64,000 nt of DNA from Bugula neritina (lineage: Eukaryota > Animalia > Bryozoa). A program made the translations under genes and the position numbers. Positions 26,953 to 61,763 of the stretch are shown piece by piece. The notes under the pieces are model-generated. The model worked only from the letters and a program-made list of their open reading frames with translations, was not told the DNA's origin and ran no database searches. Position 1 is the stretch's first letter; each line of letters begins with the position of its first letter. Location: positions 6,305,929-6,369,928 of the forward strand of contig OZ037769.1 of the NCBI GenBank assembly GCA_964035545.1, given 5' to 3'.

Positions 26953-27101
26953 CTAGTGAAACCACTTAAATTTCTGTTCAGGAGAGAAGCTAGAATAGTC
27001 CAATGGTAAAAGTATTTCTCCAGCTTTTTTAGGTCGAAATCTTGCAACATACTGGTACAGCACAATCCTCATGTTTTGTGGAGTAGACTGGTGGCTTGGA
27101 A

Positions 27102-27177
<76 letters not shown>

Positions 27178-30939: not shown

Positions 30940-33900
30940 ATGGGATGTGGCTATTTTACGTGTTCCCGGAACGCACTTATGGCTCTAAATATTCTTTACG
31001 TCGTAAGTATAAAAATATATCTTAATGTTTATATTATTCAACTGTAGGCTATAAATCAGTTTTTGCTGAGATACAATTGAAACTCTGTTCACTGCTGTAG
31101 TTGTTATTGCAATTATAAAATTAAATGCTAGAACAAGAATAACTATCAATTCAATATTATTTAAAAGTAAAACTAAAAGATTAAGTATAAGATTCACAAT
31201 CACTTTCAGAATGATAATGAGCACCCTTGAATTTAGAGTTAAAGTGAAAGTTAATTCTAGAGTTAGTATAAATATAATATCAATACATTACAGATTACTG
31301 GTTGCAGGTATCAAAATTTTACCTGACACTCATAATCGTAGTGATAGTCATACTGATACTCATACTGCCAAATCACCAAACTGAAACAAAAACTTAAACT
31401 TATAGCAGCAATAAAAATTTAAATTCAGTTTCACTAAATTTAATTGAGACTTAGACACTCCTAAACTCTATACTTATACTATAAATATAATCATAATGAC
31501 GATATCCTACCACAGTGTTCTAATTTTTACTGAATGAATTAGTATTACACTACAACTACTGCTAGGTCTAGACCTCATTCTTCTACCTCTCAAAGTATTC
31601 TTACAGCTGTTAATGATTGATTTTTAAGCTAAACTTAGTTAATGTACATGTAATGATGAATTTTTGGCACAAAATATTTATGAAAGCTTTTTTGTAAGTT
31701 ATTTTTACTATGTTGGGTTTTTTCTGCTGACTCATTTTATAAGCAGCTCCAAGTTAAAGGTGACTGAGTGCAGTAGTTTGGGATTCTCCATTTGTTCCAA
31801 GTTCAAACTTAAACCCCCAACTCTAAACTTGAGAATCCCAAACTACTGCACTGGCTGCTTATAGAGTGATTCAGTATAGTGCAGCACTGACAAAAAAGGT
31901 TGTATTTTTCCAACCTCCAATGATGCATTTTCTTGATGCATAGTGCTCAATAATAATACCCATAATTGAAATCTTATTGTTACAACTACAAGTTTAGATT
32001 ATGATACCTTACGATAATCATAACTATGTCATTTTATTACTTATCATTGACTTTATAGCCTATGGCTACTGTACAAGTTGTCGTATTTATCATGATACAT
32101 CTTTGATCTTTCCTTTTTTTCTAGTTTACCTTGACATATTCACTGACTATAAATATGTTTGTCAGACTGATGCTTACAGTCAATGGCCCAGTAGTACTCA
32201 CAATTACTCAAGCCATCTTAATTAAATCACCCAAATACCTTCATGATGATGTTTTACAGACTATTTTAAAATATTGTGTCTAACATTTGAGTTCTGTTGT
32301 GGTCTTCTTTCTGCTGAATTTAATTTTCTTAAAAGCCTAAATGTATGTAATAAAAGTCATTTGTTAAGATATATTAAATTTTAACTTGCGTTTATAAGTT
32401 TAACATATTGTCAGTATATTAAATATTGATGTTTATTTAGTTATAGTACCAGTATTCTGTGAATATTTATGAGATTTTAATTTTAGTTTAATAAATACTT
32501 TTTATTTAGGACTAAATCAATTGACTGTCAACACAAACAGCTTTCCATTAGTTTTAAATCATCTCAAACATAAAACAATATTTTTTAAAAGCTGAATAAG
32601 TTTCACTTGCTTTGGCAGCCAATGAGATTATTATCTTCTGCTATGTCTATGGCTTTGTTACTTAGCTTCAATGCATGGTTTGGTTTTTGGAATGCTCTAG
32701 TTTTGTTGTGAGCTTTAAAAGCATCTATTGCTTTAATTGTTCACTAGAATTGAGGTTATATAAGAACTCTTATACACTAGCTTTGCACCCACCTCAGTCA
32801 CACATGCTGCAGCTTTAAAACAATAGAATTGTAGGTATTAGCCTCCAACTAGAGTTCTAAAACTTTAATTGTTTCTAAATAGGTGCTGTAATCTTGCGTA
32901 ATAACTAATAGTCAATTTCCACCGCAGTTGCTGAGCTCTATTAATTAATTGTTATTTTCAAAACAATATGTAGTATGATAGATCTGCTGGTGTAGAGTGA
33001 CTAGAGTCTGTAGTCAAACTCTCTGAACCTTTGGACTTAGCCTTCCTAAATCTACACAATTATGATTACTTGTAACCTAGTAGGGTGACATTCTGTGATT
33101 TGAACAAGATCTGATAGGCAGAGTAGATGAGTTGAAAATCTCTCAAAAAGTGGATCAAGATGAGCATTTAAAGCATTTATAGTAGTAATTTGTGTTGTAA
33201 TATGGTGTTGTCTGTTGTAGATGATTGCCGTGTTACTCATTGGAGTGGCAGCATACGCCAAGGCCATCTCTTTCATCGATAGTCTAGCAATAATAGGAGC
33301 AGTGATAGGTTGTGGAGCTTTCCTACTGCTCCTTGCCTGCATGGGCATCTTCGGTGCTGCTAAACATCATCAAATATGTTTATTCTTTGTATCCTTTACT
33401 TGACATAGACTTAGATCACTAGACTAGTTCTCTGTGCACAAGGAGGTGGTTAAACTTCACGTAATTTCATTCGCTCTAAACTCTGTAATACTATGAAATT
33501 ATTACCTTTTGCTAGCTGTTAACTGCTACAAGTTTTGGTACATTAATATGCAATGTGCTTAGGTACTTATAGAGAAAATCTCATATCTTCACCACCCATT
33601 TATGCTTACATACAGCATTTAACAAACATCTGCCGTTGCCTTTTGTGTAGGTCTTTGAAGTTTTTCTATAAAATTGGTTGGTGTAAAGCTGCTGGCACGT
33701 GTTACAGTGTTAACAGCCATTGCCGGTTCACTACCATCATATCCAGTGTTGAGACAACGTGGCCAGTGTACAGTGCATAGTGATATTGCCTGCTAGTATA
33801 TTCTCCTTAACCCTCTCCACAGTATATGGTTATATTATTTCTTCTCTTTCTAATACAATTTAGCTTAGCAGTCGCGTTGCTTGCCCTCAATAAAGATACT

Positions 33901-36400
33901 CAAGATACTCTCATAGAAAAAGCCTGGGAGGCCGAAAATATTACATTATCAAAAGATGTCAATTGTTGCTCTCTGTATGCATGGAAAAAGGGTGATAAGA
34001 CATGTTCTGTAAGTCCACAGAGCTTTTCTTCTAACCTTTTTACAAGTGCTGTCTTTTTGGGAATTGTCCTGCTCACAGTAACCCTGGCTATAAAGATCTT
34101 TGGGCCACAGTGTTATACACATATCTAGAGTCTAGACTAGGCAGGTGTTAATATACTTCACTGCAGGTGTAGACTTATTTGAGAATAGATGAGACCAAGT
34201 GATAACTAGTTATATATAATCAGTCTATGTATTAATATATTTCACCATTTAATTGTTACCTTATTACACATAGTGTTGGTCACAGCTGATCACATGATCA
34301 TATCCTATAGCTGTAGCACCTGCGTGCCATGTCAATAGCTGTAGCACCTGTGTACAATGTCAATTGAGTTTGTGAGGTGCGACTTGTAGAGCAGTCTGAG
34401 GTGCTGTGAAGGACAGAACGCAAACAGTCTATGCTGCGGTGGGAAGGCCGATGTACCTTGTCCCTGTGAATCTTGTAAAAAGAAGTTATCTCCTCTGGTG
34501 GAAATGGCTTGTAAAATCACTGGTGGTGTCAGTCTCTTCATCAGTATTACAGAGGTAAGACAACTCTGCTCCTGCAAAGTCTTAGTTATCCTGCTGTATT
34601 GTTCTTCTGCTGAAACTTGAGTACTTCTAGCCTCTATGTACAAGATTCTATAGGATTCCATTTTGTGAATAAAATGCCTTTCAACCTAATGTACCCTGTA
34701 ACATTCAAAATCTAGAAAGTTCCTGGATTCTTTATAACAAATCAACTTAGACTGAGCCTGCTTGTCCCTCTAGGAGGGGCGGGGATTGGAGGTCTCAAAC
34801 TATGTTAAAATAACTGAATACAGTACTTTGAATTTACTTATTCTAGTAACTACGAGTTTGAAAATCCATTTTGGCTCATTTTTATTCAAAGATGATCCAA
34901 AATGGATTGTCTCTCTCCTTGCACTGTGGCCATGCAGTGCCACCTGATGTTGCAGAACATTGAATAAACTCTCTTCTCTCGTATTCCCCTTGTCAACGAA
35001 CAGCGCTAACCCTGAATCTATTATTTCAGAGTTGTGTCGCCATGTATTACAAACATATTCCTCTCAAAACCTGATCCTAGCAAATAATTTATTTATCGTA
35101 AACCCTTCACTGCTGTTAATCTACTAACTTCCCTTTTCAGATATTTGGTGTGGCGATGACTGTTAGGTATCGCAGTCAGCGTAACCCACTGAGTAATGCT
35201 AATCATTACCTTTAATAGTCCAAGTGTGTAGTCTGCACTCAACTGTATCCAGTTGCTATCAGGTATCACCTCGTTTACCTGTTCCTGTCTCCTATCTAGT
35301 GACTTGTGCACTCAGTTACTTGTCTGATGTAGTTAGTATCTGCTAGATTACAATATGATGTCGCTGTCGGGTGGGGGTGGTATTACTTGCTCTTCACTCT
35401 AAATGTCTATTCAAAAGTCCGCACCATTGAAAATTGAATTTAAAATAATGTTTTGTTTGTTGTTTCATTTATATGTTTAATTTTAGAGTTCAGCCTCATT
35501 TCTATTGACAATTACTAGAGTCAGCATGTTCTTTGTTATTTAAAGTCATGAAATATATTCCAGATTTCTTGTTTGTCTCAACTCTTTGTGATTTATTTAT
35601 GGATGCTACGAACAGAATGTATTCATTTGTTAAACAGTTAAATTTCAAACCTGATGTTGATAGCATCTTTGTTTTAATTGAACTGCATTTCACAGAACTG
35701 TTTGTTAAATGGTATCTAGTAAAATGTTGCATTGAATAATAATTGTAGAAAATATAAAAAGCATTAAAGGGAGTTGTCTCCACATATGTTCTTGGAATCA
35801 TATCCTGTTACACTACTAAACTACTTTCTCACTCTACAAACTTATAGTCAATACACATACAGCTGCTCTTGTTTTTATAAGTTGCATTTATGTGGGTTGT
35901 CAACCTCTTCTATTTCCAGTTATAATATTACTGGAAATAGAACTGCAATATGCTACGTGGCACACCTCATTTCCTACATACAAACACTACATTAAATTGG
36001 CTTTACAATGTTGTGTCTAGTTTTACCATACAATGAATTGTGTTAAGCCTCTGCCAGTTTTATAGATTTCATCTTATCTTTTCATTCATATGACACTTCT
36101 CTTTGCAGTCAGATTTCAAGATCATGCCATATGATAATAATGGAATGCTTAGTCACATATTTATTAGCAGTTGGTTTCAAAAAGATTCCTTCCTTTTGTG
36201 CTATCAATTCATTTACACTTCATTAGTTGCTTTGCACAAAGTTGCTTTCAAGAAAAATGAATTTAGGCCCTTGATATTGGGTACATTCAACACATATGCC
36301 TAATGCGCTCTTCCTTGTATTGTAGGTGTTTGGAGTATATTTATCCCTGAGATTTCGCAATCAAAAAGATCCTCAAGCCGATCCAAATGCATTCTTATAA
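30940..36400 (+). CDS. TSPAN13: Tetraspanin-13/31-like protein
   Basis: Exons 30940-31002 (MGCGYFTCSRNALMALNILYV), 33221-33388, 33823-34008, 34390-34554 (Cys-rich EC2, TM4 start), and last exon 36326-36400 (VFGVYLSLRFRNQKDPQADPNAFL*). An alternative last exon lies at 35141-35215. GAAKHHQICLFFYM and RNQKDP..PxAFL are TSPAN13/31 hallmarks; the gene is likely a co-ortholog of both. Confidence 0.9.
33389..33822 (+). other. U12-type (minor spliceosome) GT-AG intron
   Basis: 5' site GTATCCTTT at 33389. Branch point TCCTTAAC at 33804-33811, just upstream of the AG at 33821-33822. Splicing restores ...CLFF|YMVIL. Confidence 0.92.
35141..35215 (+). CDS. Alternative (duplicated) terminal coding exon of the tetraspanin
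   Basis: ctactaacttcccttttcag| acceptor, phase 0. Encodes IFGVAMTVRYRSQRNPLSNANHYL*, identical in length (75 nt) and alignable to exon 36326-36400. Confidence 0.75.
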   Translation: MFGVAMTVRYRSQRNPLSNANHYL

Positions 36401-43000: not shown

Positions 43001-46000
43001 CATGCAGCTTTAACTAGTAAGAGTTTAAAAACTTTCTCAAATTAAACACTATAATAGTTGAGCTTCAGGTATTTTCTCTTATGCTAGCTACCACGTCATA
43101 TGCCGGTTTTTATTAATTTATTATGTCTGTTGCTGGTAAAAATAGATAATAAATAGTCATTATGTCAATATCATGCCCTCATGGTTTCAGTTGTTAGGAG
43201 TTAGAGCATATTATTATAACTCAGCTGATAATGGAAAGCCTTGGGCGTCTCTTTGGGATAAGGAGGTATAAATATATGAGAAGTATGTAGATGACAAAGA
43301 TGTTATGAAAGGGAGTTAAATTCTTGACCTAACACATTGTTACTCAATTTTCAACTTCAAAAACGAATTACATTCTCACACAAACGCCATCTAGTTTACT
43401 ACAGCTCATCACAAGGCAAGTTTGTCAGCTCTCTTATTACAAGTTGTAAGACACATCTCTACGTACTGTTTATGACACACAGATTACTGCAGTGAACTGT
43501 TCAGCACCTGGTAAGTTACAGCTTATAACAGTATTGATAATACTTCTAACTGTTCTAACCTTGAAACAAGAAATGGTCTTTTTTATTCAAATAAGTGAAA
43601 ATTATACTTAATTATGCTAGTTGGATTTCTTCAATTTAAATATGATACTAATACAGCAATAGAAGAAACTAAACTTTATAACTGCAATAAAAGTGCAATT
43701 AAACATTTCCTTGTAATCGAAACTGAAAAATATGTTAACTTTTAGATTGTCAAGTTTAATTCTTACTAAGTATAAATCTACAGAACATTCTCTGAAGAGA
43801 TGGAAGAACAATATGTGGTAAGTTATTATATTCAACTAAAAGAGATAGTGTAGATTATCCATGACTTGAGATATGTACACTGCACTTGCTTTGATTCTAA
43901 ACTTGATTTGTCGTTTGTGGATCATTTCAAGAAAAGATACAAAAAAAACTAAAACCACTCTTGATTTGACATTTATAACTTATATGACTGCCAAACAAAC
44001 ATGTGTACATACTACACATGCACGTACACACAAATTAGGCAAGTTTCAGATGCTTTCTTAGTGGTATAGAATAAAATTTACTGCTGTCTACATATATGTA
44101 TTGCTGTATTTTCATATTTGCAAGACTTAACTCTATGAGTTCCCAGTATACTTTATTTTATAAAAATAGGTTTCTGTCAACACTAAAACAAGTTCAGTAA
44201 ACTTCTATAAAATCAACATTTACAGTTAATCTTAGTGTAATTTTATTATGCTATTTTTTCATAGCATAATTCAACTATATTATGTGTTTTGCATGTCAAT
44301 ATTGTGTTCTCTTATAAGTAATAGATTTATTTTGTATCAATTTTATAAGTATCTTGTATATGGACATATTGTAGATTACCGAAGAAGAGCTGAGAGATTT
44401 CAAAATAGCTTACTGTTGTGCACCTGGTGGAAAATATAACCTAGAAGCTCCAATACCGTTCCTAAGGAAGTTAGCTGATGGCTATTCGAAAAAATATAAA
44501 ACTACTGGTGATTGGGCGGACATTGTAAAGGTACTAAGCAAACGCACAAAAAAACTACCGAAATTCACCTATATCGACTTCAATTTTTGTTGCGAACTCA
44601 TGCCTTAGCTTTTAAAAATTGTAATGTATAGTTAATGTCATTTAAAACTATGAGTCATGACAGTTGTGTAAACCAGCAGAAGTTTGAATATTATATTGTA
44701 CTTTTTTGTGAAAAAAAAGCTATTAACAGTATTGCATTACCTACAAAGGATTGGTAAAAAGGAATTTAATGAGCTACTAGCAATATTGGGAATCAGTAAA
44801 TTCTTCATCCCACTGAATATATATATAATAGTTGCAATCCTATCCATAAAATAATTATTTATTATATATAGTATGAATTATTTTTTCAAGCTATTGACAC
44901 CGACTGATAAGAAAACCTATAACTTTGTCATTTTAACTTTATGACTTTTCAAAATCATTTTAGAGTCATGCTTTGTGCAACTCCATAGCTAAGCGAAAAG
45001 CTGATGAAGCCGACTTGTGGAATAAAAAGGCTTTTGAAGCACAGAAAGCTTATTGGAAAGAAAATGGAGTTTGGAGCTATGAAGTCCAAATGCATGTGAC
45101 TGGTCAACTGGTTGATGAACTAGAAGAAATAAGGGAAGAGTGTAGAATGCAGAATAATCAAATTGAACACATAGTTGCACAGTATAACAATGACAAGGTT
45201 ACAAGGGCTAACTTTACTGAGCAGTTTGTTTCAGGCGTCAAACAAATTTCGCTGACTAGTTCTCAGAAAATGGCAGCGTTTGCAAAAAAGGTGTTCGAGT
45301 TCAGTGTCGCTAGTCTGTCCATTCTTCCTCCTTGTAAGTTTTGTGTGGTAGCACTGGGTTCTTTAGCTAAAGGCGAAGCAACACCCTACTCAGACTTAGA
45401 GTATTTGTTTCTAATTGAATCTTCCAATTGTGAAACAATCGCTTATTTTGAAAAACTTGCTCTTTCAAGCTATTTCATCATTGGAAACTTGCAAGAAACA
45501 GATTTAGGGTACATGGCAATAACAGAGCTGAAAGGATGGTTTGATGACACACAAAAAAGTGGTTTCAAAATTGATGGATTGAAAGATGGAGCTGGAAACA
45601 TTCCAACTGGCAATGGATCTACTTCTCAGCGAAACCATTTCATCGTCACTCCAACATCTCTAATTCACAAATACAAATCAGTTTTAGATAACCCTCAAAG
45701 TGATGCTATTGTTGGAGATCTCACTGCTAAATTACAGTTCACCAGACTAGTATACTACCACGGAGATGGTGCGGAAAAACTCTTAGATCAATTCTCGGAA
45801 CAAAAGCTTATGCTACAGCCCAATGACATAAGGCAGAAAGTCAACAGAGAAATGTTTATTGCTGATACAAAGAAATATGGCTTTAAGCCTACAGAAGAAA
45901 TGATAAATAATGGATTTTCAATCAATACAAAAAAGGAACTGTATCGATATCCATCAATCTTGCTTTACAACATTTTGATATTATTCAACATATCATTGAC

Positions 46001-49000
46001 CCATTCATGGGAAGGTTTGAACAACCTCAAAGAAATGAAACATATTTCTGTCTCCATACACGAGCACATTCTATTTTTGTTAGCATGTGCATGTTACCTT
46101 AGACTTTCAACATATCATTTTTATGATTCAGCTGAAGAAAGCTTGTCCGTTCTTTCAGTGAATTATTTTACTTACCCTGATGTTCGAAAGACTAGCATAG
46201 CAGAGACAAAAACTAGAAAAAAATGGTTCCTTCCACAAAAACTGTTTAACCTTCATTGTGAGTATTCAACACCCTTAAAGAAGCACATTAGCGCATGCAA
46301 GATTGACAATATTGAAGATGTTATAAAAACAGCTGTTCAACAACCCAACTGGCTTGTGAAATTTCAAACTTTTCATTGTTGCAATCGTTGGTCCAAAGGA
46401 CAAGGTATTCTCCAGAAACATATCAATCTCGAAACAGTTCTAAGAAATCCTGAGCAAACTATTGACACAATTTACAGTTTAGTGAGCAATGACTTTGAAG
46501 ACTTGTGGAACACCATCAGGGCTTTAACTTATTCATTAAGTCAAGAAAGAAAGAACAAAGAAGCCCTGGCTTACCACTTGATTATTCAAAGAATGATAGA
46601 ATCAGATTTGAGTGCAAAAATCTATGAAGAGCAACAGTTAATCATGGCTGAGTCAAAAGCAGAAACTGGTATGTGCTTTTTCGCATTGACTGATTTCAAC
46701 AAAGCTATAGAGGAATACAAAAGTTCACTACAGATCCGAAGTATGTTTTTATCAAGTGACCACGACCAGTTGGCAAAAATGTACCTTTGCCTTGGAAGAT
46801 CCTACATTTATCTCTACAGATATCAGGAGGCTCACACTCATCTGTTTATTGCTCTGCAAATCTGTCACAATCAAGCATCGAAGGAAGTTGAATACAACTA
46901 CTATGGTGAAATTGTACATTCAGAAACTCCTGTGCAGCCATTAGTTGGTCTCTTGAAAATCAGTCCAAAAGACCGGCTCCGCTATTTGAACAACTCATCT
47001 ATTCTACTCGCCAATGTTTTATGGGAGATCGGATTGAATTATTTTTACACAAAGTACTTTGAGCTAGCGTTTTCTTATTTTAGCAAAGCCCAAGAGATGT
47101 TTTACGATTGTTATGGAAGTAAAGCTTGTCACAGAGACATTGCCCATCTATTTTATGCATTGGCTTGTGCTAGTTCTATGTTAGGACATCATGACGAAGC
47201 TGAGGAGTATTTCAAACGAGCGACTGCAATGACCATTCAAATCTTTGGGAAAACAAATCGATTCAAAGCTGCTGTATTACATTATTTTGCCATGAATGAT
47301 TCGAAGATTTACCATAAAGTTTTATTTAAGTTATTTTTAAGTCTACCACGCTACCGAGTAGCACACTCAGAGTCAGCAACAGTTATAAGTCGATATGGAT
47401 TGCATCTCACACACATTAGAGAATATTCTTTTGCTGAAAATGTACTGAAACAAGCACTACAGATGTACCATGACAGTGCTAATGTTGGAAATAGCAAATA
47501 CCCAGCCGGGTACATTTCTGTCACATTATCACATTTGGCTTTAAACTATTGGAAACAAGGAAAGATTCAGCTTGCCAAAAAGACTTTTGAACAATCTTTA
47601 GAGCCTTTCAATGAAATCGAGAAACTAATGCCTAGTTCTGCTGACTTAGAAAGAGGAGAAATTTTTCAAATGATGGGTGCCATGCACTTATCTCTTTTAC
47701 AATATCACAACGCAATCGTCTACTTTCGCCAAGCAAAACAAAAATTTGGGTTTGCTTGCGATGACCCTAATCATCCAAAAATTATTGAGGTTGAGAATTT
47801 AATTCGGTCTACCTCAAGGCATCTTCAAAACCAGTGACTGTAATATCTTGTTATCCAAAGAGACAGCATGGTGATTAGAATAATTGTTTTAAATGCATGG
47901 TTTGTGTGTTTTATTCATCAGCAATGTAACTTGATATAATGCTTTATGGGTTTTATACAAATACTCACGGCAAAAATCAATGATATTTTATTTGAATAAT
48001 CATAATAATGAAAGTGAATAAGTTTTATTACAATTAAAAAATTTCTATTTCTCATAGTTTTATAAGTTATCTAGCCTTTTTTAGCAAAGCGGTTTAAATT
48101 ATTCTTACTTCTGTTAAACTCCGTAGCAATTGTAAAACTTAAAATAAACAGGATTTGCAAAATATCTGCGCCTATCTTTATACTAAATTGATTCATCTAT
48201 ATTTAACTTCTATAGTTGAGTCATTATCATAAAGCGATTACGATTGTAATTCAATTATTAGAAAAACTTAAATCGCCTAGGAGATTGGACTGACAAATGG
48301 GGCATGTCGTTCAACATTGCCAAAAGTAAAATTATAGCCTTTAATCTTACACAAAACTTAGTAAAATACACCTTGAATGATTTTGAGCTCCAACACGTAA
48401 ATAGTACCAAACACCTGGGAATGTTAATTAAGTCTGATTGTAAGTATGATACACATATTCATGAGAAAGTTCTAAAAGCAAAGAGCCAACTTGGGGATGA
48501 TTAGAAGAGCACTATACTCTGTGCCACAGCATGCTCGTCTGCTATCATATAAAACCCTCTGCTCACCACATTGGGAATATGCTTGTGCTGTCTCGAACCC
48601 AGCTTGTAAAAGTGACATTGCCAGCCTGGAAGGTGTTCAGTTAGATGCTCTTCGCTTCATATCCGGCTTAAAAGGCGAACAGATTTGAATTTGCTATGGA
48701 AAAGCTTGGAATAATACCACTAGCATCCAGAAAAAGAAATAAACGCACCAGTCTGCTTTTCTAGATTTTAGCTGAAGAGGTACACCACCCAGCACTCACT
48801 GAGTCATATGACCACCTAGTTAAACAAACATCGTCAACAGTCCAAACTAGGTCCCAGGCTCAGTGCCAACCAAAATAAATATTGCAATAGTTTTCTACTA
48901 CGAACAATTGGAGTTTTCAAAAACACTATTTTTAGTTTTCACTTTTATTACATTATTTTAGCAGCGTTTTAGTAATAGAGTAGACAACTTCCAATAAAAC

Positions 49001-52000
49001 TCGTTTTAAGTCAAGTCCAAGTTAAAAGCTATACTGCAAACACTCATCCCAATCAAATCTGGCAATATGTACGTAAATTTGAAGAAAAAATATACACTAC
49101 AGAATGAAATAAATAATGCACAACTTTGATCAATTTGATAAGAGCTACTTCTTTTTATAGGCACAGAACTTTTCAAATTTCAAACAGGCATGGGATATTT
49201 ATTTGAAGGGCCGAACCTAAACTTCAATTTCCTAATATTTATTTCTACACATATTATTATTTAGAAGATCTTACACAAAATAGCTGTAACTAAAAAGTTT
49301 TTAATGCTAACAAAATACCAAAATCGTCCAGCTTAAAGATAATAACATGCTTGGTATTCCAGATATAAAGTACTATATTAAATTAACTGACCCACTTTTG
49401 AAACTGCCAATTGACTTAACAAGTTAGTCATATCGAGCAACTTGTAAAAATAACATACAGAAGTTCCAATCGCTAACTGCTATGCTATGCTGTATATTTG
49501 CCAGCATGGCGTAAGACTGCATTGTAAAAAAACTGTAAACCTTGTTTTAGCTGAAATGTATGCGTGCAGTTATGTTTATAACATATTTTTTAGGCTTTGA
49601 TTTTATAAAACAGCTATACTAGCCAGGTACTTGTTGAATGAGTTCCATTTCTAATACTTAAAACATTAAGATCTAATATATCACATAGTGTAAATAGTCA
49701 CAGGCATGCTTCATATACTAAAAGAGGACAAAGAACTAGTAGGCTGATTGTAAAAACTTACATCCAGTTTCTAGGTGCCAAAATGATACAGCAGTTGACC
49801 TAGTTTTTGCTGATGCTACCAGCATATCTGCATGTGTGAAACAATCAAAATTATAAAACCTCAACTGCCAGCAGAGAGAAATGGTCTATTAATATATTGT
49901 AATGTACAATTGTAAACACATGGAAGAAGGGATTGAAACAAAAGAAAATCTGTAGTAAGAAGTCAATTTTATAGAAAATTCAAACTTGTGTTAGTTCAAG
50001 AATATAGGCTCGTCCATTGTAGACAGGTGATCTAAATATATGCACCCAAACCGCCTATTATGTTATGTGAGCATAAGAGAAGACAACTACACAATACTGA
50101 AATGACACGGTAATAAAATAAGTGCATATAATAATTGTACTGGAACATACTGTCAGTGATCAAACTGAAATAGTGACATGAAAAGCTGGTGATTTTTTAT
50201 TTTCACAATCAAATCAATGTTATGGTTGATTTTACTTAACTTAGCATGATAACCTTTTCAGAATACTTGGAGCTGCATTTGTGTAAAGAGTTGTCTATTT
50301 ATATATGCAGATATTTCATATTAGAGTTGAATATAAATTATTAGAAGTTATGTTGTAATAACTCACTGTAACAGAGACTGTGGCATAGGCCTGGACAGAG
50401 CTGTCCATTAAACACCCACTATGTAATGATGCTGGCTAACTTACTACCCTTATAATTCCACTGCTCATCATATACCTACTCATTATTCTTACACTGTGCA
50501 CTCTGCTGTCCAACTTCATTCAATCAAAGACAAACAAATCATTTCAGAAATAATTTTCTAGTTAAATTTCAATAATTGTTATAATTTGCTATTTTATTAC
50601 TCCCTCATGTGATACAGTTATATTGCATCTGTAATATCAACACTGTCAGAGCTGGTGTTTAAACTGCTATAGGCTGTAGCACAGCTTACCACTTTGCAAG
50701 TACAGTGTGACTATTCCATTAATATGTTTAGTATATATACAGTGCACTAAACAGTTTAACAATTTACTACTGAGATACAGTGCTTTCTAATATAATATGT
50801 TCATCCAAATACGTAAACATATATTGCCTAGTATAAATAGCATGCACCATGTGAGCAGCTTTAACGTACTACAATATACTGGATACATTCTAACTCGCTA
50901 CCTGAACAGGGCAAAGCGTAGATAAGTGAGAATATACTATACATTCCAGAATCTACTATAATACACTAAATTCTATAGAATATTACACAGGATACTACAT
51001 CAGAATCTACAATAGAGCATATATTTAGGAGTAATGCTAGTCAGGCTATTGTCTTGTGCAGCTCAACAACTTTGGATATAATTAATCCATGTATACGAAT
51101 ATAATGCTCACTATATTTATATTTTATACTTAAAAATAACTATAAAGTACAAAATAATTTAATGTAGAGGACATATGCTATGACTGAAACAATATTTCAT
51201 GATTGATATACACATGTAATTAGACTACTTATACTATGAGAGCACAAGTTACAATTTAATTACTCATATGTTTTACAAACTAAGCTTTTGAAGCTTTAAT
51301 TATTCTTACTATTCATTTAACTTTCAGATTTAGAATAATCCTAAACATTGTTATCAAGTTAGAAAATGTTCAAAATATCAGAGCTTCTTGCTCATCTGCA
51401 TACTGGTAGAGCTAATAACTAGCGTAGATTGAGAGAAGATGTAACCAACCTTTGGAAGTGATTAGATATGAGAGAGCCCCATCCACTTTGTTCAGAAAAA
51501 GCATCCTACAAAGGAAGAAGCAAGAATTGCATTACAGAAATCTCCGCCCCTGAGAGGAGGCTGGAGTTGAAAGACAGACTTTTACTACCCTTGTATTGCT
51601 GCATATATTAATAAGAATTAAACTGACTACATTTCCACACTAACTGGAGATCGTGTACACTGAAATTTTATTGAATGAAAAAGCACATATATTGGAGGTA
51701 TATGTACAGCATAATGGAGAAATTGAGAAAAGCCTGTATTCTAGATTAAAAATGTAAGAATAGAAGTTATGTTCTCACTACGCTATGTTTCTCCACTACT
51801 ACTCCTAAATGATATAGTGGGTGGAATGGCTAAACTCTCGTATAACTATAAGTAGTGTATAGATAAACTCTCTCAAGTCATATAATGTGTGCTGCTGAAC
51901 TACATAGAATGCTTATATAAAAGAAAGATATGAGAACATACATAATATACTTTATAATAGTAAAACAACATTTCATTGCTCAATTTTACTGTCTCATCAA

Positions 52001-52248
52001 GAAAGTATAACTCCCAGAGAAATAAAAATTAACTCACTACATGCAAGAGAGACAACCAGTAAATATACTCAAAATTAAGAATGTTTTATTATTCGATAAC
52101 TATATATTGTTTTAAAAAACAAGCTAAAACACTCGCTGCCAAAATTGTGATCAAATGTTTACCTATATTTATATTATGAGGAGACAACTTCTCTTACCTG
52201 CGTCTGAGAATCTCCTATCAAAAAGATTTTTGAATACTTTCTGGAACA
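37042..52248 (-). CDS. IAH1: Isoamyl acetate-hydrolyzing esterase 1 homolog (SGNH/GDSL hydrolase)
   Basis: Exons 52248-52198 ([17 protein letters not shown]), 51505-51450 (SGWGSLIS), 40872-40790 ([16 protein letters not shown]), 39141-39005 ([18 protein letters not shown]), 38105-38018, 37690-37566, 37215-37042 (DGLHL...FGL*). All four SGNH blocks are present and phases are consistent. Confidence 0.92.
41395..41507. repeat. Short ~22-bp tandem repeat (ttatatagaagtgtcatgacag-like)
   Basis: About 4 degenerate units are visible. Confidence 0.7.
43800..47837 (+). CDS. GlnD/DUF294-type nucleotidyltransferase + TPR repeat protein, paralog 1 (~1015 aa)
   Basis: Exons 43800-43817 (MEEQYV), 44375-44530, 44964-47837 join in phase 0. 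Pol-beta motif [26 protein letters not shown] (~45340-45420), helical INTKKELYR and YLRLSTYH segments, then multiple TPR-like helix pairs (e.g. [31 protein letters not shown]) ending [11 protein letters not shown]. The same exon structure is conserved in paralog 2. Confidence 0.85.
48262..48900 (+). mobile_element. Degenerate non-LTR retrotransposon (CR1/L2-group) 3' RT/ORF2 fragment
   Basis: [18 protein letters not shown]...KHLGMLI... then, after a frameshift, [21 protein letters not shown]...LEGVQ..ALRFI. Confidence 0.82.
51708..51808. mobile_element. MITE family A, internally deleted copy
   Basis: taatggagaaattgagaaaagcctg ... tttctccactactactcctaaa, as at 10441-10604. Confidence 0.7.
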
Positions 52249-52498
52249 TTGAAGCTCAGGAACACGCTGCTACCAAAAGCAAGGAGAGTTTATATAATTA
52301 TAGGTATCAAATTACCTGATTCAAAGACTGCTTAGAAATCAGAGCTAATGGGATTGAATTATCAAAACAATAAAATCAATCACAATGCATTGAATTTGAC
52401 AAAGTTCTACCAATTTGCAACATGAAGTCAGTGAGGCTACTTTTGCTCAAGAGTGACTGACTTTTGAATTGCACTACATCTATCATAGAGATGTCAAG

Positions 52499-52722
52499 GT
52501 AGCAGCCGTAGTCTAGGGGTTAGAATGTTGCTTTAGTAAACACAAAGTCGTGGGTTCGAACCCGACAAAGGCCGTTGGTGATGTTAGGAAGAGCATCCAG
52601 TCATAACATTAACTACTCCTGTGCCAGCTACCTGAATAAGTCCGTATTTAGCTCGATCTAACAAGAAAACCCTTTCCATCAAGGGTTTCTCACAGGGATG
52701 GTGACTATAAACATGCATGAGC
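52499..52722 (+). mobile_element. tRNA-derived SINE, family S1
   Basis: agccgtagtctaggggttag...gggttcgaaccc (B box), then the same body as 26149-26350. Confidence 0.82.
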
Positions 52723-54022
52723 TTTGTACCATAGAAATGTTAGTAGCTAACTATAAATATGTATTTAGTATAACCTACCTCCATAACTCATCAAATCTTC
52801 TACTAGCTATAGTGGCCTACGATGTGAACAACTAAGCCTCAACTAGAAGGAAAATATATGACAAAGTTTAAAGGTCAAATACAGTAGAAGAGAAAGAATA
52901 ACAGCTAGAAAGTTCTACAAGTCTACCATTACGTAACAAATCACATGTTAGGAGTAACTGGAGCCCAACACTTACTTGATATCTTAACGAGTAACCAGTA
53001 GTCTACTAAAAGCAAAGTATGCTAATATCCTGTGCACTCTGAGGGTGATTGAGATCAACTGTTGTGTTATTATAATAGCAAATTCCTACTTTATGGGACA
53101 ATGCTGCCCTACTTGTGAAAGCAATTAGCATAGGCAATCACTCATGATTATATTACCAGCACGTTATTACTCAAAGATATCAATATCTTACATTGTACAA
53201 ATAACAAATAGTAGGAAATTATTATTATACTCTTTTGATTGTGTGTAATATTTCCCCAACACATAATGTGTATATATATATTATGTAGCTGTAGTCTATG
53301 TTGTAGCATATAAAGTACCTTTGTCACAGCTGTGTTCATGCACCTATTAATTGCTGTAATTGAAATGCTTGTTATATTAGACAGATAATATCAAATCAGT
53401 ATAGACTATTTTAAGTTTTAAGAATGGCTATATATTATAGATTAAATTATTATAGAACATTTTCCTGATAATGATGATGATACAGAATTATTTATGCAAC
53501 AAAACTAATAATGGTAAAATAACTAAACAAATAGTATAATTAAATAATTACAGCACAACATTTAGATATTCAAAGACATAGCAGAATATTAATTTATGAA
53601 CCAAACATTTTAGATGTCAATTTGCAAGTATAATAACTATTTTATATAGGCCTACTTCATTAAAATACTCATGCTAATAAAGAACTTATGAAGATACTTG
53701 ATTTAACAAGTTGGTCATCTTGAAGCTGCTTGTAAATAATAGTATACAGTAGTTCTAATTGCTAGCTTTTATGACTGCATTGTGAATAGACTGTGAACCT
53801 TGTTTTAACGGAAATGTGTGAGAGCATGCGCTATATATGTCCATAACATATTGTGTAGTCTTTGTTTCAATAAAATAACTCTTACTCCCTAATTTATTTT
53901 TTCAATAAGTTTCAATTCTAAAACTTGAAGCACTAACATCTAATATATCATGTAAATAGCCACATGCTCCATATGCAGGTTCTAACACTAAGCTACTGAT
54001 CATGAACATTCTATTTCAAAGA

Positions 54023-54180
54023 AAGTGCAGTAAAGGAGAGATTTACGAAAGCCTGTGTAATAGATAAGGAACACTGCAAACAAATCCATGTCTGTGCCAG
54101 ATTTTCAACCTGAACTAAACCAAAATTCAAAAGCAATTAAAAACTTGGGCTGTTAGAATTTCCCTTTTACTGCATCTAAA
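54023..54180. mobile_element. MITE family A-related diverged copy
   Basis: gtgcagtaaaggaga...aaagcc / ggct...cccttttactgcatctaaa inverted termini. Confidence 0.55.
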
Positions 54181-55229
54181 TATTAGTTATTATTATATTT
54201 TGTAGCTTTATAGGCACGGAGTTATCTTCTCAATAGTTGTGACTTGACTTCTACCCAATTAACAAACAAAAAGGAAGATGAAGGAACTAGAGGTTCTATT
54301 AATAACTAGTATTTTTGATGCTATTTTAAAATACCAAAGCTTTAAAATGCTAAGACACTGCCCAATTAGTTCAAAACTGAAAAATCTCACAAACAGCATC
54401 CTGACACAGACTTTCCTGCAGGTAGCTGTTGGTAGCCCAAGATGTCATGTTGTTGTATATGAGTCATGCATAAAACTGCACCTGAGATACACTCAAATTG
54501 TATTAGACAGTAGACATTGTATCACCTTGCTGGACATTGATGCCCACCAATTGGTGGTACAATGCATAAAACTAAAACAATTTGCTTAGCTATTTTGGCT
54601 TCTTTCGTTTTAGAATGTTTATTCAATTTCGCAATCCAATGGTGTCAAAAGATTGAAAACATTTTTTTTAGCTCATGCCTACAAAAATTTACAAACCTAA
54701 CAAATTTGAGCAGTGAATTGCGAATAATATTTAAAATTTCAATAATTTTAGCTTAATAGTATTGTTTAAACGCATATATACTGTTTGAACACATGCATAT
54801 ACTACAACACTTATGATAAATTAAATGTAAATTTTTGGAATCAGCTTTTAACAATATTTCAACAAATATTTTTTCTTTTTGTGTAAAGAAACTATTTTTA
54901 GAGAAGAGAGCTGCTAGGTTTCACAAAGTTAAAAGCTCACTGGCAGCATGTATAGCTTTGTCACAGAGTGACTCTGCATTTAGATTTTAAACTCAATAAA
55001 GACAATGGACAGTATTTTATCTTTATTTGTATTATTTGAAGAGTAGTTCACAAATCTGGAAAATAAGTAATTATAGAGCCTCTCTATTTATTATGCAGTA
55101 GTATATTATGAGACCTATAGTAGCATAACTGTTATGTTCACTGAAATTTATTTCCAACTGAATAAAACCAGCTGGAATGTGTGAGCATTAGAATCGACCT
55201 AAGACTGGATAACATTAAATAAAAGGGTG

Positions 55230-55416
55230 GAGCCAAAATATAACAATAATAGTAATATATTTATCAAGCAGTAAGACCTTAGTACAGTGTAGTTTGAACC
55301 CGAAAACACATGTAATGTCTTTCCATAAATATATCTTGTAAAATCTACAGGAATTCGAACCACAGACCTTTGGCTTGCAAGCAGGCGAGCTAACCAATCA
55401 CACCACAGGAGCAGCT
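55230..55416 (-). mobile_element. tRNA-derived SINE head, family S2
   Basis: Minus strand reads gctgctcctgtggtgtgattggttagctcg...ggttcgaattcc (A and B boxes) without a proper acceptor stem. The 3' boundary is approximate. Confidence 0.55.
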
Positions 55417-55763
55417 GGGTTAACTCAACACTATACAGTGCTCAGTCAGGTCGATCTGAGAAATGTGTTCAGTGGGATTATAGTTTTTCTATTGCACTGT
55501 CTGTCCGATGTGGCTAAAGAGTTTTGAGTAAAAAAAAATCGTTGCAGCTTAAAAAAACTAACAACATTTATAAACTTTACACAGTACAACTTATTTCTTA
55601 AAGTAATCTGACAAAATTGGCCAATTTAAGATACATAATTACTCTTGACTGTTTTAACAGCCTATATAATATTATTATTCATACACCTACAAGTTTGTTA
55701 AGCCTAAAGTTATGCAGCAAATAACCAATAAAAGCAAGTTTTTCTAGTTATTTAAATTTGATT

Positions 55764-55937
55764 CAGTAATGGAGTAATGGAGTAATGGAGAAATTGAGAA
55801 AAGCCTGTGTTCTAGATTAGAAATGTAGCAAAAGAAGTTATGTTCTCGGAAGAATTTCAACCCACACCCCAAACCAAAATTTAAAAAGAAAATTAAAGAA
55901 TTTTGGCTATTTCGATTTCCCCACTACTGCTCCTAAA
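55764..55937. mobile_element. MITE family A copy
   Basis: Colinear with 10441-10604; the left end has a triplicated agtaatgg. Confidence 0.8.
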
Positions 55938-56659
55938 TGGAGGCTGAGAAGGTGGCCAAGGTAATTGAGTGCTTTGCTAGTAACTAACAAGGCATTATTG
56001 CTCTTATTAAATCAAACAGATATTTAGTGAGCAATATTTTTCTACTTCTCATATCAATCTGGCATCTATTCATGGTCTTATTGACTTGAGAACTGAGTTC
56101 AGGCTGAACAGACTGACCAGCTCAGATCGACAGAGTTCAATCATTGACTTTTTTCCATCGAACGAGGTGGCTGAGATTGGATCCATGGAAAGACTCTATG
56201 CAGTCTACAAGCTGTCCCTGTAATACAGAACATAATATACAAAATAGCTATGCTAGTATAATAATATATTGGCTACTTTCCTTTTTTCATTATTGGCGTT
56301 ATGTCAATATGAGTATTATTGTTGAATTACCACAATGTAATAGTATGTCTTACCAGTGATAAAGCTGCTAGATGAAAGAGAACGTTCACTCAGTTTGTCT
56401 GGGTTTTATTTGCATTAGCTTGTAGCTATCTCAGCTATACGGTGGCTGGTAGGGCAACTCTTAGTGACACGATAGCGCACGTATCTGATAAGCTATTGTC
56501 ATTGGCTAAACTCTCAGCGTGCCACTATAACAATTATGTTCTTTTATTTATGATAGTAGTTATGGTAAACCTAACCTAATGCAAATACTGGTGACAAGGA
56601 AGTACTAATATATGAGCTGTATCATTATTGTGTGAAACTACATCGACTCCACACCTGGT

Positions 56660-57004
56660 GAGTTACAATGGTGTCTAGTACAAATGGCACAGGTAATAAT
56701 AGCACCAGTAATAATGGTACAAATAACAAAGTAGGTAAAAATGGAACATTTTCAATATTAGGGTTTGGGGTGGGGTTGGGGGTTTGGAATGGGGGTTTGG
56801 AATGGGGGTTTGGAATGGGGGTTTGGGGTTTAAGGGTTTGGGTTTCGGGTGGGGGGGCTTTGGGTTTGGGAACATTTAAACATCAGTGTGCCATTTTTAC
56901 CTACTTTTCTATTTGCGCTATTATTACCTGTGCCATTATTACCTGTGCCATTTTTACCTGTGCCATTTTTACTGGTGCCAGTTTTACTTAAAATCGAGTT
57001 ACAA
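56660..57004. mobile_element. Foldback/MULE-like non-autonomous element with 9-bp TSD and G-rich core
   Basis: TSD gagttacaa at 56660-56668 and 56996-57004. Inverted arms are built from 15-bp units (ggtaaaaatggcaca). The element is absent at the homologous site of paralog 1 (~43511-43525). Confidence 0.85.
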
Positions 57005-57241
57005 CTTATAACAGTATTGATAATACTTTTAACTTAACTAATATTAAAACAAGAAATGATGTTTTCTCGGAATAACTTTGATTATAGCAGCTAAATTCCT
57101 CAATTTAAATATAATACAGCACAGCAATAGAATAAATCTATTAAACAGTTTTTTGTAATCAAAATTGAACAATATGCTGTCTTTTAGATTGTCAAGTTTC
57201 ATTGGCACTAAATATAAACCTACAAAACATTCTCTGAAGAA

Positions 57242-60200
57242 ATGGAAGACCAATATGTGGTAAGTTATTAGACTAAATTCAACTGAAAGAGATGGTGTAG
57301 ATTATCCATGGCTTGAGATATGTACACTGCACTTGTTTAGACCCCAAAAGTTATTTGTTACTTGTTTACAACTATAAGGAAAGGAAATGCATAAAAATTT
57401 ATAATCTTACTGCATTACTAAGACAATTATTTATGTATATAATACACATTAAAAAAGGTGCCACTTTATAACTCCTCAGACATACACACACGCTAAGCTA
57501 AAATAAAGATTTTATATAAACTTTATCAAATAGTTGGCAAACTGCCAGTGAGAAATGTTCTTAAAGTTGTGTACATTGTTTATAAGCCTGAAAATTTATA
57601 TTTACTGCATATAAGCATATTATATGCACCTATCGTACCAATACAATGTTATGCTAGTGCTTACTTTATAAGCTTATATTTACAATCACTTTATGATTAT
57701 CCTGTATATACACCTATTGTAGATTACCGAAGAGGAGCTGAAAGATTTCAAAATAGCTTACTGCCGTGCACCTGGTGGAAAATATAACCTAGAAGCCCCA
57801 ATACCTTTTCTGAAAAAGTTAGCTGATGGATATCTAGACAAATATAAAGCCACTGGTGATTGGACGGATATTCTCAAGGTAGTAGGCAAACAGAAGAAAC
57901 TGATAAAATAAAATTAGCATTAAGATCTCAACAAACAAAACCTGCAATTTCGTGTTTGCTGCAACATGCATATACAAATATTATTTTCATATTAACTAGG
58001 AAACGTAAATAAGCCACCGCAATCAAAACTTGTGCAAATATGCTCCAGTTTACTCAACACCACTGACAACATTGCTACTTTTGTAACTATTTAAACCCTG
58101 TTCCATAGCAATTTTTATAGCATTACTAAAAAGTACATTCATTGAGCTATTGACAAAGATAATCAAGATCCATTTACGGCCCCTTTGCTTTACAGTTTAG
58201 ATAGACCTTGCTATAATTATTTATAGTTGGGAGAGGGCTTACTAACTGTTGAACAAGCAAAATAATTAAACAATAAAAATATGCTGCTTTATTAGCTTGT
58301 CATTTAAGTTATTTAAAAATCCGGATATATAGGTCATTTCATGAAATAATAAGAATAATAAAAATAACTTCGTGGAATAAAGCAACCCCTAGTCTATCAT
58401 GAATGAAAGTACAATTAGTGAATGAGTATGAAAACTATGCTGGCATTAGAAGTAAAATGAAAATTTTATTTTGTAAACAAAATCACAAAGGATGAAATAC
58501 CAACAAGTAATATAACTTGGTTTTCACAGTTCGTTAAAGTTTGTTTCAAAAATGTTGCTAACTCTTATAATATACGAGTGGTAGAACCTAAGACCTTGCC
58601 TAATTAAACTGTCTTGATCTACTGCAGTCTATACTTTTTACCAACACCAAATAGTGAGAATACAAACACAAGCAGCACACATACATAATCAGTGCCATTA
58701 TTAACTCAATAACTAGAGAGGGCCCGTTTTACACACAAAATTAGGTAGATGTTGATTCAACTAAACCAGCTAATTTAGTAATGGTCATGCAGAAAGAATA
58801 AAGTTGTTCTAATCAAAATAAAGCTTTTCAATTACTATGTATGCCATAATTTGTCACTGTAAGTTTATGACTTTCAAAAATCATTTTAGAGTCATGCTTT
58901 GTGCAACTCCATCTCGAAGCGAGAAGCTAATGAAGCTGAATTGTGGAACAGAAAAGCTTTCGAAGCACAAAAAGCTTATTGGAAAGAAAATGGAGTTTGG
59001 AAATATGAGATTCAACAGTCTGTGACTAGTCAACTGGCTGATCAGCTAGAGGAAATAAGAGAAAAGTGTAGAATGCAGATTAATCAAATTGGTTGCCTAG
59101 TTGCAAAGTATAACGACAACAAAATTACTCGAGCTAACTTTACTGAGCAGTTTGTTTTGGACGTCAAACAAATTTCGCTGACTAGTTCTCAGAAAATGGC
59201 AGCGTTTGCAAAAAAGGTGTTCGAGTTCAGTGTCGCTAGTCTGTCCATTCTTCCTCCTTGTAAGTTTTGTGTGGTAGCACTGGGTTCTCTAGCTAAAGGC
59301 GAAGCAACACCCTACTCAGACTTAGAGTATTTGTTTCTAATTGAATGTTCCAACTCTGAGACGATTGCTTATTTTGAAAAACTTGCTCTTTCAAGCTATT
59401 TCATCATTGGAAACTTGCAAGAAACAGATTTAGGGTACATGTCAATAGCAGAGCTGAAAGGATGGTTTGATGACACACAAAAAAGTGGTTTCAAAATTGA
59501 TGGCTTGAAAGATGGAGCTCGAAACATTCCAACTGGTAATGGATCTACTTCTCAGCAAAATCATTTCATCGTCACTCCAACATCTCTTTTTCACAAATAC
59601 AAATCAGTTTTAGATAACCCTCAAAGTGACGCTATTGTTGGAGATCTCACGGCTAAATTACAGTTCACCAGACTAGTATACTGCCACGGAGATGGTGCAG
59701 AAAAACTCTTGGATCAATTCTCGGAACAAAAGCTTATGCTACAACCTAATGACAAAAGGCAGGAAGTCAACAGAGAAATGTTTATTGCTGATGCAAAGAA
59801 ATATGGCTTTAAGCCTACAGAAGAGTTGATAAATAATGGGTTTTCAATCAACACAAAAAAAGAACTGTATCGATATCCATCAATTTTGCTTTACAACATT
59901 TTAATAATTTTCAACATCTCAATAACTCATTCCTGGAAAAGTTTGGACAACCTCAAAGAAATGAAACATATTTCTGTTTCTTTGCATGAACATATTCTAT
60001 TTTTGTTAGCATGTGCATGTTACCTTAGACTTTCAACATATCATTTTTATGATTCAGCTAAAGATAGCTTGTCAGTGCTTTCAGTGAACTATTTTACTTA
60101 CCCTGATGTTCAAGAGGCTAGCATAGCAGAGACAAAAACTAGAAAAAAATGGTTCCTTCCGCAAAAACTGTTTAACCTTCATTGTGAGTATTCAGTACCC

Positions 60201-61763
60201 TTAAAGAAGCACATTAGTGCATGCAGGATTGACAATATTGAGGATGCTATAAAAACAGCTGTTCAAAAACCAAATTGGTTAGTGAAATTTCAAACTTTTC
60301 ATTGTTGCAATCGCTGGTCCAAAGGACAAGAACTTCTCCGGGAACACATCAATTTAGAGATAGTGTTGGGAAAACCTGAACAAACCATAGAAGCAATCTA
60401 CCGTTTAGTGAACTATGACTTTGGGGAGTTGTGGAACACAATCAGGGCTTTGACCTATTCATTAAGTCAAGAAAGAAAAAACAAAGAAGCTCTGGCTTAC
60501 CACTTGATTATCCAAAGAATGATAGAATCAAGTTTAGGACAAAAGAGCAATGAAGAGCAACAGTTAACCATGGCTGAGTCAAAAGCAGAAACTGGTATGT
60601 GCTTTTTCGAATTGACTGAGTTTAATAAAGCTATAGAGGAATATGAAAGTTCACTACAGATCCGAAGTATGTTTTTATCAAGTGACTACGAACAGTTGGC
60701 AAAGATGCACCTTTGCCTTGGAAGATCTTACATTTATCTCTATAGATATCAGGAGGCTCACACTCATCTTTTCATTGCTCTGCAAATTTGTCATAATCAA
60801 GCATCGAAGGAAGTTGAATACAACTACTATGGTGAAATTGTACATTCAGAAACTCTTGTGCAGTCATTAGTTGGTCTTTTGAAAATAAGTCCAAAAGACA
60901 GGCTTCGTTATTTGAGCAATTCATCTATTCTACTCGCGCATGTTTTGTGGAACATTGGAATAAACTATTTTTACACAAAGTACTTTGAGCTTGCATTTTC
61001 TTATTTTAGCAAAGCCCAAGAGATGTTTTACGATTGTTATGGAAGTAAAGCTTGTCACAGAGACATTTCCCATCTATTTTATGCATTGGGTTGTGCTAGT
61101 TCTATGTTGAGACATCATGACGAAGCTGAGGAATATTTCAAACGGGGGATGGCATTGACCATTCAAATTTTTGGGAAAAAAAATCGATTCAAAGCTGCTG
61201 TATTACGTTGTTTCGCCATGAATGATTTGAAGATTTACCGTAAACTTTTAGCTAAGTTATTCTACAGTGTACCACGCTACCGCGTAGCACACTCAGAGTC
61301 GGCAACAGCTATAAGTCGGTATGGATTGCATCTCATACACACTGGCGAATATTCTTTCGCTGAAAATGTACTAAAAATAGCACTACAGATGTATCACGCC
61401 AGTGCTGCTGCTGGAAACAGTAAATACCCAGCTGGTTATGTTTCCGCAACATTATCACATTTGGCTTTAAACTATTGGAAGCAAGGAAAGATTCAGCTTG
61501 CAAAGAAGACTTTTGAACAATCATTAGTAACTCTCAATGAAATGGATGAGCTCGTTCCTAATTCTGCTAATCTAGAGAGGGGAGAAATTTTTCAACTGAT
61601 GGGTGACCTGTATCTGTCTGTCAGTGAGTACGACAATGCGATTGGCTACTTCAGTGAAGCAAAAGAAAAATTTGTGTCTGCTTGTGATGACCCCAATCAT
61701 CCAAAAATTATTGAGGTTGAAAAGCTAATTTGGTCTACCTCAAGGCATCTTCAAAACCAGTGA
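57242..61763 (+). CDS. GlnD/DUF294-type nucleotidyltransferase + TPR repeat protein, paralog 2 (~1015 aa)
   Basis: Exons 57242-57259 (MEDQYV), 57723-57878, 58890-61763. Colinear with paralog 1 without indels, with an intact [15 protein letters not shown] motif (~59283-59327). Confidence 0.85.

Follow-up and report, generated by a model that had tools for sequence, protein, structure and literature searches.

DrrA-like nucleotidyltransferases joined to tetratricopeptide repeats form an expanded gene family in the bryozoan Bugula neritina and are candidate protein AMPylases

What would an animal do with a nucleotidyltransferase (NTase) of bacterial style that is joined to an array of tetratricopeptide repeats (TPR)? 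This question is raised by two genes, here called A and B, in a stretch of 64,000 nt from the bryozoan Bugula neritina (contig OZ037769.1 of assembly GCA_964035545.1, positions 6,305,929 to 6,369,928; in the following, the window). A preliminary description, made from the sequence alone, had read them as a tandem pair of intact paralogs of about 1015 aa, fusing a GlnD/DUF294-like enzyme to TPRs. Our answer, for which sequence and structural models give roughly even chances, is that they encode a protein AMPylase which is targeted or gated by its TPRs and is used in defence or non-self recognition. The parts of this answer differ in strength. That the enzyme is an active NTase appears very probable from its sequence and model; if so, a protein is probably the acceptor. 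A role of the family in defence or against non-self is somewhat favoured. As donor we infer ATP.

The features of the two genes are as follows; residue numbers here and below refer to exon 3.

43800..43817, + strand: gene A, exon 1 (ATG and five codons), followed by a GTAAGT donor; the arrangement recurs in gene B
44375..44530, + strand: gene A, exon 2 (52 aa), bounded by AG and GT, phase 0
44964..47837, + strand: gene A, exon 3 (957 aa and stop), with helical N-terminal part, NTase core, HEPN-like helical domain and TPR solenoid
45204..45833, + strand: gene A, Pol-beta NTase core (residues 81-290), by DUF294 and by the DrrA profile and structure match
45357..45401, + strand: gene A, catalytic motif G-x11-D-x-E (G132, D144, E146), by residue alignment to 6yx5/3nku
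45573..45575, + strand: gene A, third acidic residue D204 (in GFKIDG), by conservation and its place at a strand end in the model
45834..46322, + strand: gene A, helical HEPN-like domain of DUF294_C type (K323, R328 and R380 conserved), by DrrA alignment and fold matches
46476..47834, + strand: gene A, TPR solenoid of about 9-10 degenerate helix pairs, by Pfam TPR and model helices
57242..57259, + strand: gene B, exon 1
57723..57878, + strand: gene B, exon 2 (52 aa)
58890..61763, + strand: gene B, exon 3 (957 aa and stop), 86% identical to exon 3 of gene A
59283-59327, + strand: gene B, catalytic motif
59499-59501, + strand: gene B, D204
60402-61760, + strand: gene B, TPR part

The larger part of each gene is a 957-codon open frame, of which the window holds two (44964-47834 and 58890-61760, both on the + strand). 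Together with exon 1 and the splicing, which are predicted from splice signals, paralogy and a Watersipora gene model, each gene comprises three exons of 6+52+957 = 1015 aa, with every intron GT-AG and in phase 0, which bears out the two intact paralogs. Between the genes, exon 3 shows 86% identity at the protein level and 89% at the DNA level; similarity beyond the exons is small. The junction of exons 2 and 3 lies at the same position in the RefSeq model of the bryozoan Watersipora subatra (E 2e-11). Exon 2 and the start of exon 3 form a conserved N-terminal segment, matching Watersipora P0008 (E 2e-11) and Branchiostoma P0160 (E 5e-8). The sequence motifs quoted in the preliminary description were located in both genes at residues 131-147, 323-328 and 378-385.

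Database searches and structure predictions were carried out with individual exons of genes A and B. In Pfam, exon 3 matches DUF294 at residues 90-166 (E 8e-6 and 2e-6 in the pair, over the curated cut-off), and several TPR families are found, among them TPR_12 (E 1e-17 and 2e-15). Single-sequence search of the PDB yielded chance matches only (Csm2, E about 0.1). With a family profile the top solved relative was Legionella DrrA/SidM, at E 6e-5 and, using a wider profile, at E 3.4e-8 in two stretches. The AlphaFold2 model of residues 1-480 (predicted local distance difference test, pLDDT, 93; predicted template modelling score, pTM, 0.92) aligns to DrrA with Z 25.2 over 317 residues at a root mean square deviation (rmsd) of 3.9, and to two GlnE domains with Z 20.0 and 19.2. 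Outside DrrA and GlnE, no match above Z 8.1 was found among 48,161 chains. The suggested Pol-beta fold of the GlnE/GlnD/DUF294 clan is thereby upheld. All characterised proteins scoring above Z 10 attach a nucleoside monophosphate (NMP) to protein tyrosines or remove it from them (PMC8097203, PMC7815794).

At residue level (6yx5/3nku), G132, D144 and E146 align with G98, D110 and D112 of DrrA, and K323 and R328 with its K241 and R246. DrrA uses D110/D112/D150 to AMPylate Tyr77 of Rab1, and Rab bound at a second site switches the enzyme on (PMC7815794). The preliminary description had made its reading depend on a third catalytic acid. We find it in D204, which ends a strand in the model, is present in 231 of 238 homologous domains and is probably the equivalent of DrrA D150, judged from its place before the common LIxTP motif and not from superposed coordinates. 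The catalytic acids are retained in 231-234 of these 238 domains; D144, E146 (as D or E), K323, R328 and R380 are kept to a similar degree as D204, and the three acids are intact in 37 out of 37 copies from the own genome. The ratio of nonsynonymous to synonymous substitution (dN/dS) is 0.17 in the NTase core, 0.20 in the enzyme half and about 0.2 overall between genes A and B; all selection figures are pairwise Nei-Gojobori counts from non-independent pairs.

The likeness to the adenylyltransferase (ATase) domain of DrrA/SidM (PDB 6yx5/3nku, Pfam SidM_N) extends over the whole two-domain fold. The first motif of DrrA is nearly the same as that of the bryozoan enzyme (GSLAKAQATEYSDLD), and the motifs LIxTP and VKxxxxRP are common to both. 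SidM_N is matched by 74 of 109 family members at E < 0.01, whereas the window protein stays under the Pfam cut-off (14 vs 27 bits, 46 of 285 positions). In the bryozoan enzyme the loop that follows the third acid is longer, and a C-terminal TPR solenoid takes the place of the Rab1 guanine nucleotide exchange factor domain and of the P4M domain, which binds phosphatidylinositol 4-phosphate. DrrA is an injected effector, whereas the bryozoan family consists of multi-copy animal host genes with introns; a survey from 2015 had reported DrrA-like proteins in Legionella only (PMC4454073). GlnE, the glutamine synthetase adenylyltransferase (GS-ATase), and GlnD share clan and catalytic layout with the bryozoan enzyme (GlnE domains Z 19-20), so the GlnD-style assignment stands at the level of the clan. 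It does not stand for GlnD itself. The window protein is without a second NTase, Pfam gives no HD or ACT match and the NCBIfam GlnD model scores 15 bits where its cut-off is 519. Orthology to GlnD was therefore rejected, and the nearest characterised protein is the host-directed effector DrrA/SidM. To our knowledge, animals are without the PII/GlnD circuit. The window protein lies outside DrrA, GlnD and GlnE proper, yet most likely, as sequence and model suggest, it works like them.

The preliminary description had left room for a nucleotide signal as the product. The enzyme might then make a nucleotide messenger, cyclic or linear, under the control of a ligand (cGAS/OAS/HalB-like), or it might modify small molecules, similar to aminoglycoside nucleotidyltransferases (ANT). 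These enzymes come from the same superfamily, animals have designs that join a sensor to an NTase, such as cGAS-TPR in oyster (PMC8195603), and ANT enzymes and HalB have the same two-domain layout (Z 6-7.5). However, CD-NTases of the cGAS type, DncV and terminal uridylyltransferases (TUTases) reach Z 4.0 or less against the model, compared with 25 for DrrA, and CD-NTases give an rmsd of 6-7; the two-lobe Mab21/CD-NTase fold was rejected on this basis. Because the CD-NTase/cGAS-type folds score so low, a second-messenger role is unlikely, the signal option is weakened, and we regard this whole alternative as quite improbable.

The helical domain of gene A scores Z 10.6 to the helical part of DrrA and Z 7-8 to HEPN proteins (HepT, Z 7.9). 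Both window proteins carry R-x4-H-x-Y (R380, H385, Y387; residues 380-387; 46101-46124 and 60027-60050), which resembles the motif of HEPN RNase toxins. From this motif comes the idea of a fused MNT-HEPN toxin-antitoxin, in which a helical RNase would be restrained by self-AMPylation and freed when the TPRs bind a ligand. The distribution of the motif speaks against it: only 10 of 238 domains have Rx4H, both window genes included, and the complete R-x4-H-x-Y is seen in 8, all of them from the local array and its close homolog. Rx6H is found in 89 domains, and the remainder are without either. Furthermore, the helical domains of GlnD, GlnE, DUF294_C and DrrA have been described as being without an RNase motif (PMC3710099). 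We give this idea hardly any probability.

Both genes lie on the + strand, in tandem as described before, but they are not merely a pair. They open a seven-gene tandem array of about 85 kb, whose copies are 85-98% identical and include broken members (one frame stops at 610 aa, and in another a stop follows 901 aa). The genome-wide count shows an expanded family: searching the assembly with the family profile gave 68 matches, corresponding to about 60 loci, clustered on nine contigs. At 53 loci an uninterrupted frame of 860-2267 aa covers the entire enzyme part. Sequences were read for 40 of the approximately 60 loci, the remaining 20 or so being counted only, and 37 copies entered the conservation count. 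Long paralogs (1221-2267 aa), whose arrays of 44-aa TPRs are concerted, form clusters in two stretches of G000 C6 (approximately 0.39-1.0 Mb and 2.9-3.15 Mb).

Close bacterial kin in the Chlamydiota, together with the fact that most of the protein is encoded by one large exon, might suggest bacterial contamination of the assembly, or else a catalytically idle scaffold. Contamination was rejected, as the genes have spliceosomal introns and long AT-rich spacers, lie in a contig of 17.7 Mb (assembly size 216 Mb) close to a C2-domain exon, and recur as orthologous DNA in an independent sample, a metagenome whose copy is 86% identical and has the intron as well. The nearly invariant catalytic residues argue against an idle scaffold. 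Taken together, these alternatives are very improbable. A protein from GCA_010799875.2, presumably a B. neritina assembly, is almost identical to two family paralogs, and the close homologs with names come from Watersipora and Bugula neritina. These relationships identify the host as a bryozoan near Bugula.

The TPR array of the preliminary description is supported by Pfam TPR_12 and by helix pairs in the model. The AlphaFold2 model of the entire exon 3 (pLDDT 90, pTM 0.89) has about ten helix pairs beyond residue 505, and its high pTM suggests that the TPRs are held in a fixed pose against the enzyme. Their fold matches are generic and peptide-binding (LGN, KLC1, OGT). In the clade of the window genes the repeats are degenerate, with a few hot spots of variation, for instance position 9 of the last repeat. 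In the long paralogs on other contigs the 44-aa repeats are near-identical and vary in number, reaching 23 or more. In six of these paralogs the ratio of nonsynonymous to synonymous differences (pN/pS), a crude pairwise count among related repeats, is 1.1-5.0 at TPR positions 2, 5, 6, 9, 12 and 13, which we take to be the concave face (groove), vs 0.3-1.3 elsewhere (permutation P 0.0006). The same pattern of groove variation is known from the TPRs of fungal NLRs (PMC4986451), and the fungal Enzyme-STAND-TPR NLRs share with the long paralogs concerted, number-variable repeats with a diversified concave face. Unlike these NLRs, the window proteins have no NACHT or NB-ARC match, hence no detected STAND NTPase switch. 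In metazoan FICD, a TPR-Fic AMPylase, TPRs choose the substrate; its catalytic fold is unrelated and it is single-copy.

From these elements the action of a TPR-directed AMPylase can be sketched. The core would bind Mg-ATP via D144/E146/D204, and K323/R328/R380 of the helical domain would complete the pocket. AMP would be moved onto a Tyr, Thr or Ser hydroxyl of a protein. The C-terminal groove would bind an extended peptide and so either select the substrate or release the enzyme on ligand binding; such a release may be likened to the way in which Rab, bound away from the catalytic site, activates DrrA. The suggestion of a defence or non-self repertoire derives from the arrays, from birth and death of genes and from the diversification of repeat number and groove among long paralogs. 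Indications of a variable sensor come from paralogs elsewhere and not from genes A and B.

Several observations weigh against this proposal. Identity to DrrA is just 16%, and DrrA D249, a metal ligand according to a review, aligns to Ser in the window proteins. Bacterial DUF294 proteins, for which we know of no assay, are similarly near in shape (template modelling score 0.60 by query). In the window clade the TPRs are under purifying selection (dN/dS 0.22), and the groove is only modestly more variable than other positions (pN/pS 0.39 vs 0.25). On the dN/dS of 0.22 and the groove pN/pS of 0.39, diversifying selection across the TPRs of genes A and B was rejected. The window genes may form a subfamily with a more settled ligand, as we propose from these sequences. 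They might also be protein NMP-transferases with a non-immune job, in membrane traffic, in skeleton or colony development or in the management of resident symbionts, with the TPRs as substrate adaptor. Such a job would agree with the conserved groove and the dN/dS of about 0.2 throughout, as well as with a fairly near relative in Watersipora (46% identity in the enzyme part), and the case for it is strongest for the window's conserved subfamily. On the other hand, a copy number of about 60, young arrays in which some members are broken, and groove diversification in sister subfamilies are more typical of conflict systems, so that we hold a non-immune job to be rather unlikely.

Beyond Bugula, homologs of the family are found in further bryozoans, Branchiostoma and environmental chlamydiae, in line with the preliminary description, which mentioned similar proteins in some invertebrates and intracellular bacteria. 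Branchiostoma DUF294-TPR proteins (XP_019620734.1 and CAH1272780.1, automatically annotated) have the same enzyme module, TPRs and N-terminal segment, often with several NTase modules per chain. The atlas clusters include chordate and ciliate members; no relatives were found in the viral contigs searched. A GTDB pattern scan yielded a single chlamydial locus, and a profile search through the phylum found more: of 151 Chlamydiota genomes, 12 carry direct homologs, and in some of these there are 11 or more copies. Identity in the enzyme part is about 22%. In Neochlamydia the NEX2 proteins, F-box-(OTU)-DUF294-TPR, likewise have a DUF294-type NTase followed by C-terminal TPRs, and a lineage-specific expansion to 50 members parallels the bryozoan one (PMC4209131). 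NEX2 and related chlamydial proteins are bacterial and presumed to be secreted, and they carry N-terminal F-box/OTU or methyltransferase-like domains that are absent in the bryozoan genes: Pfam finds no F-box in exon 3, and exons 1-2 add only 58 aa, which match the N-terminal segment of the family itself. On one chlamydia-like contig the encoded order is F-box-TPR-NTase-TPR-NTase-TPR, reminiscent of NEX2, and such F-box fusions suggest, from sequence, that the chlamydial kin act in the eukaryotic cytoplasm. A Rhabdochlamydiaceae protein (L023:2609-5329) has a class I methyltransferase-like domain fused to the same NTase and is followed by TPR pieces and a transposase-like open reading frame. 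On another, gene-dense contig (L050:203-14541), a two-NTase TPR gene immediately precedes two others, one of TIR-NB-ARC type and one large and of TPR type.

A FastTree phylogeny, with long branches and a non-monophyletic outgroup, places all bryozoan sequences in a clade of 223 rows (support 100), apart from a Branchiostoma clade which is nearer to the chlamydial rows than the bryozoan clade is. This layout fits a possible gain of the enzyme from host-associated bacteria, perhaps more than once. More tentatively, and at clearly less than even chances, bryozoans and, separately, amphioxus may have turned a bacterial DrrA-like effector enzyme into one-component receptors, in which a variable TPR groove senses a foreign or non-self peptide and directly triggers AMPylation.

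Further features of the window lie outside the two genes. At 24330-25244 (+), a 305-codon frame has a signal-peptide-like start and then Trp/Thr/Arg-rich 26-aa and Pro-rich 11-aa repeats; Pfam gives no match, and the product is possibly a secreted structural or adhesive protein, judged from this composition. The C2-domain exon is at 27032-27385 (-) (Pfam E 4e-5). An exon at 33811-34125 (+) resembles a tetraspanin by eye, and Pfam gives no corresponding match. Tandem repeats of 13 nt and 15 nt occur at 56748-56987 upstream of exon 1 of gene B and have no counterpart at the gene A position.

The preliminary description had called the design a candidate undescribed system. Our literature search, whose coverage left out most subscription journals, found no paper on an animal DrrA-like enzyme-TPR family; the domain layout as such was already known from NEX2 (PMC4209131). 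Fold, chemistry and bacterial domain layout are thus known, and what we did not find in the literature is an expanded animal family with a DrrA-type active site. A review from 2021 lists Fic and SelO as the only metazoan AMPylase classes (PMC8097203). If our proposal is true, the family would be a third such class and an example of host use of pathogen-style effector chemistry. The question of activity is tractable, with nearly the whole protein in one exon, a confident model and obvious catalytic residues. For a receptor role the clusters of long paralogs are the best targets, and if that reading is true, they would represent an immune or allorecognition receptor design without NTPase switch or second messenger. 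Bryozoans are colonial animals, and little is known about the genetics of their immunity and colony fusion. For them, this family provides candidate recognition genes.

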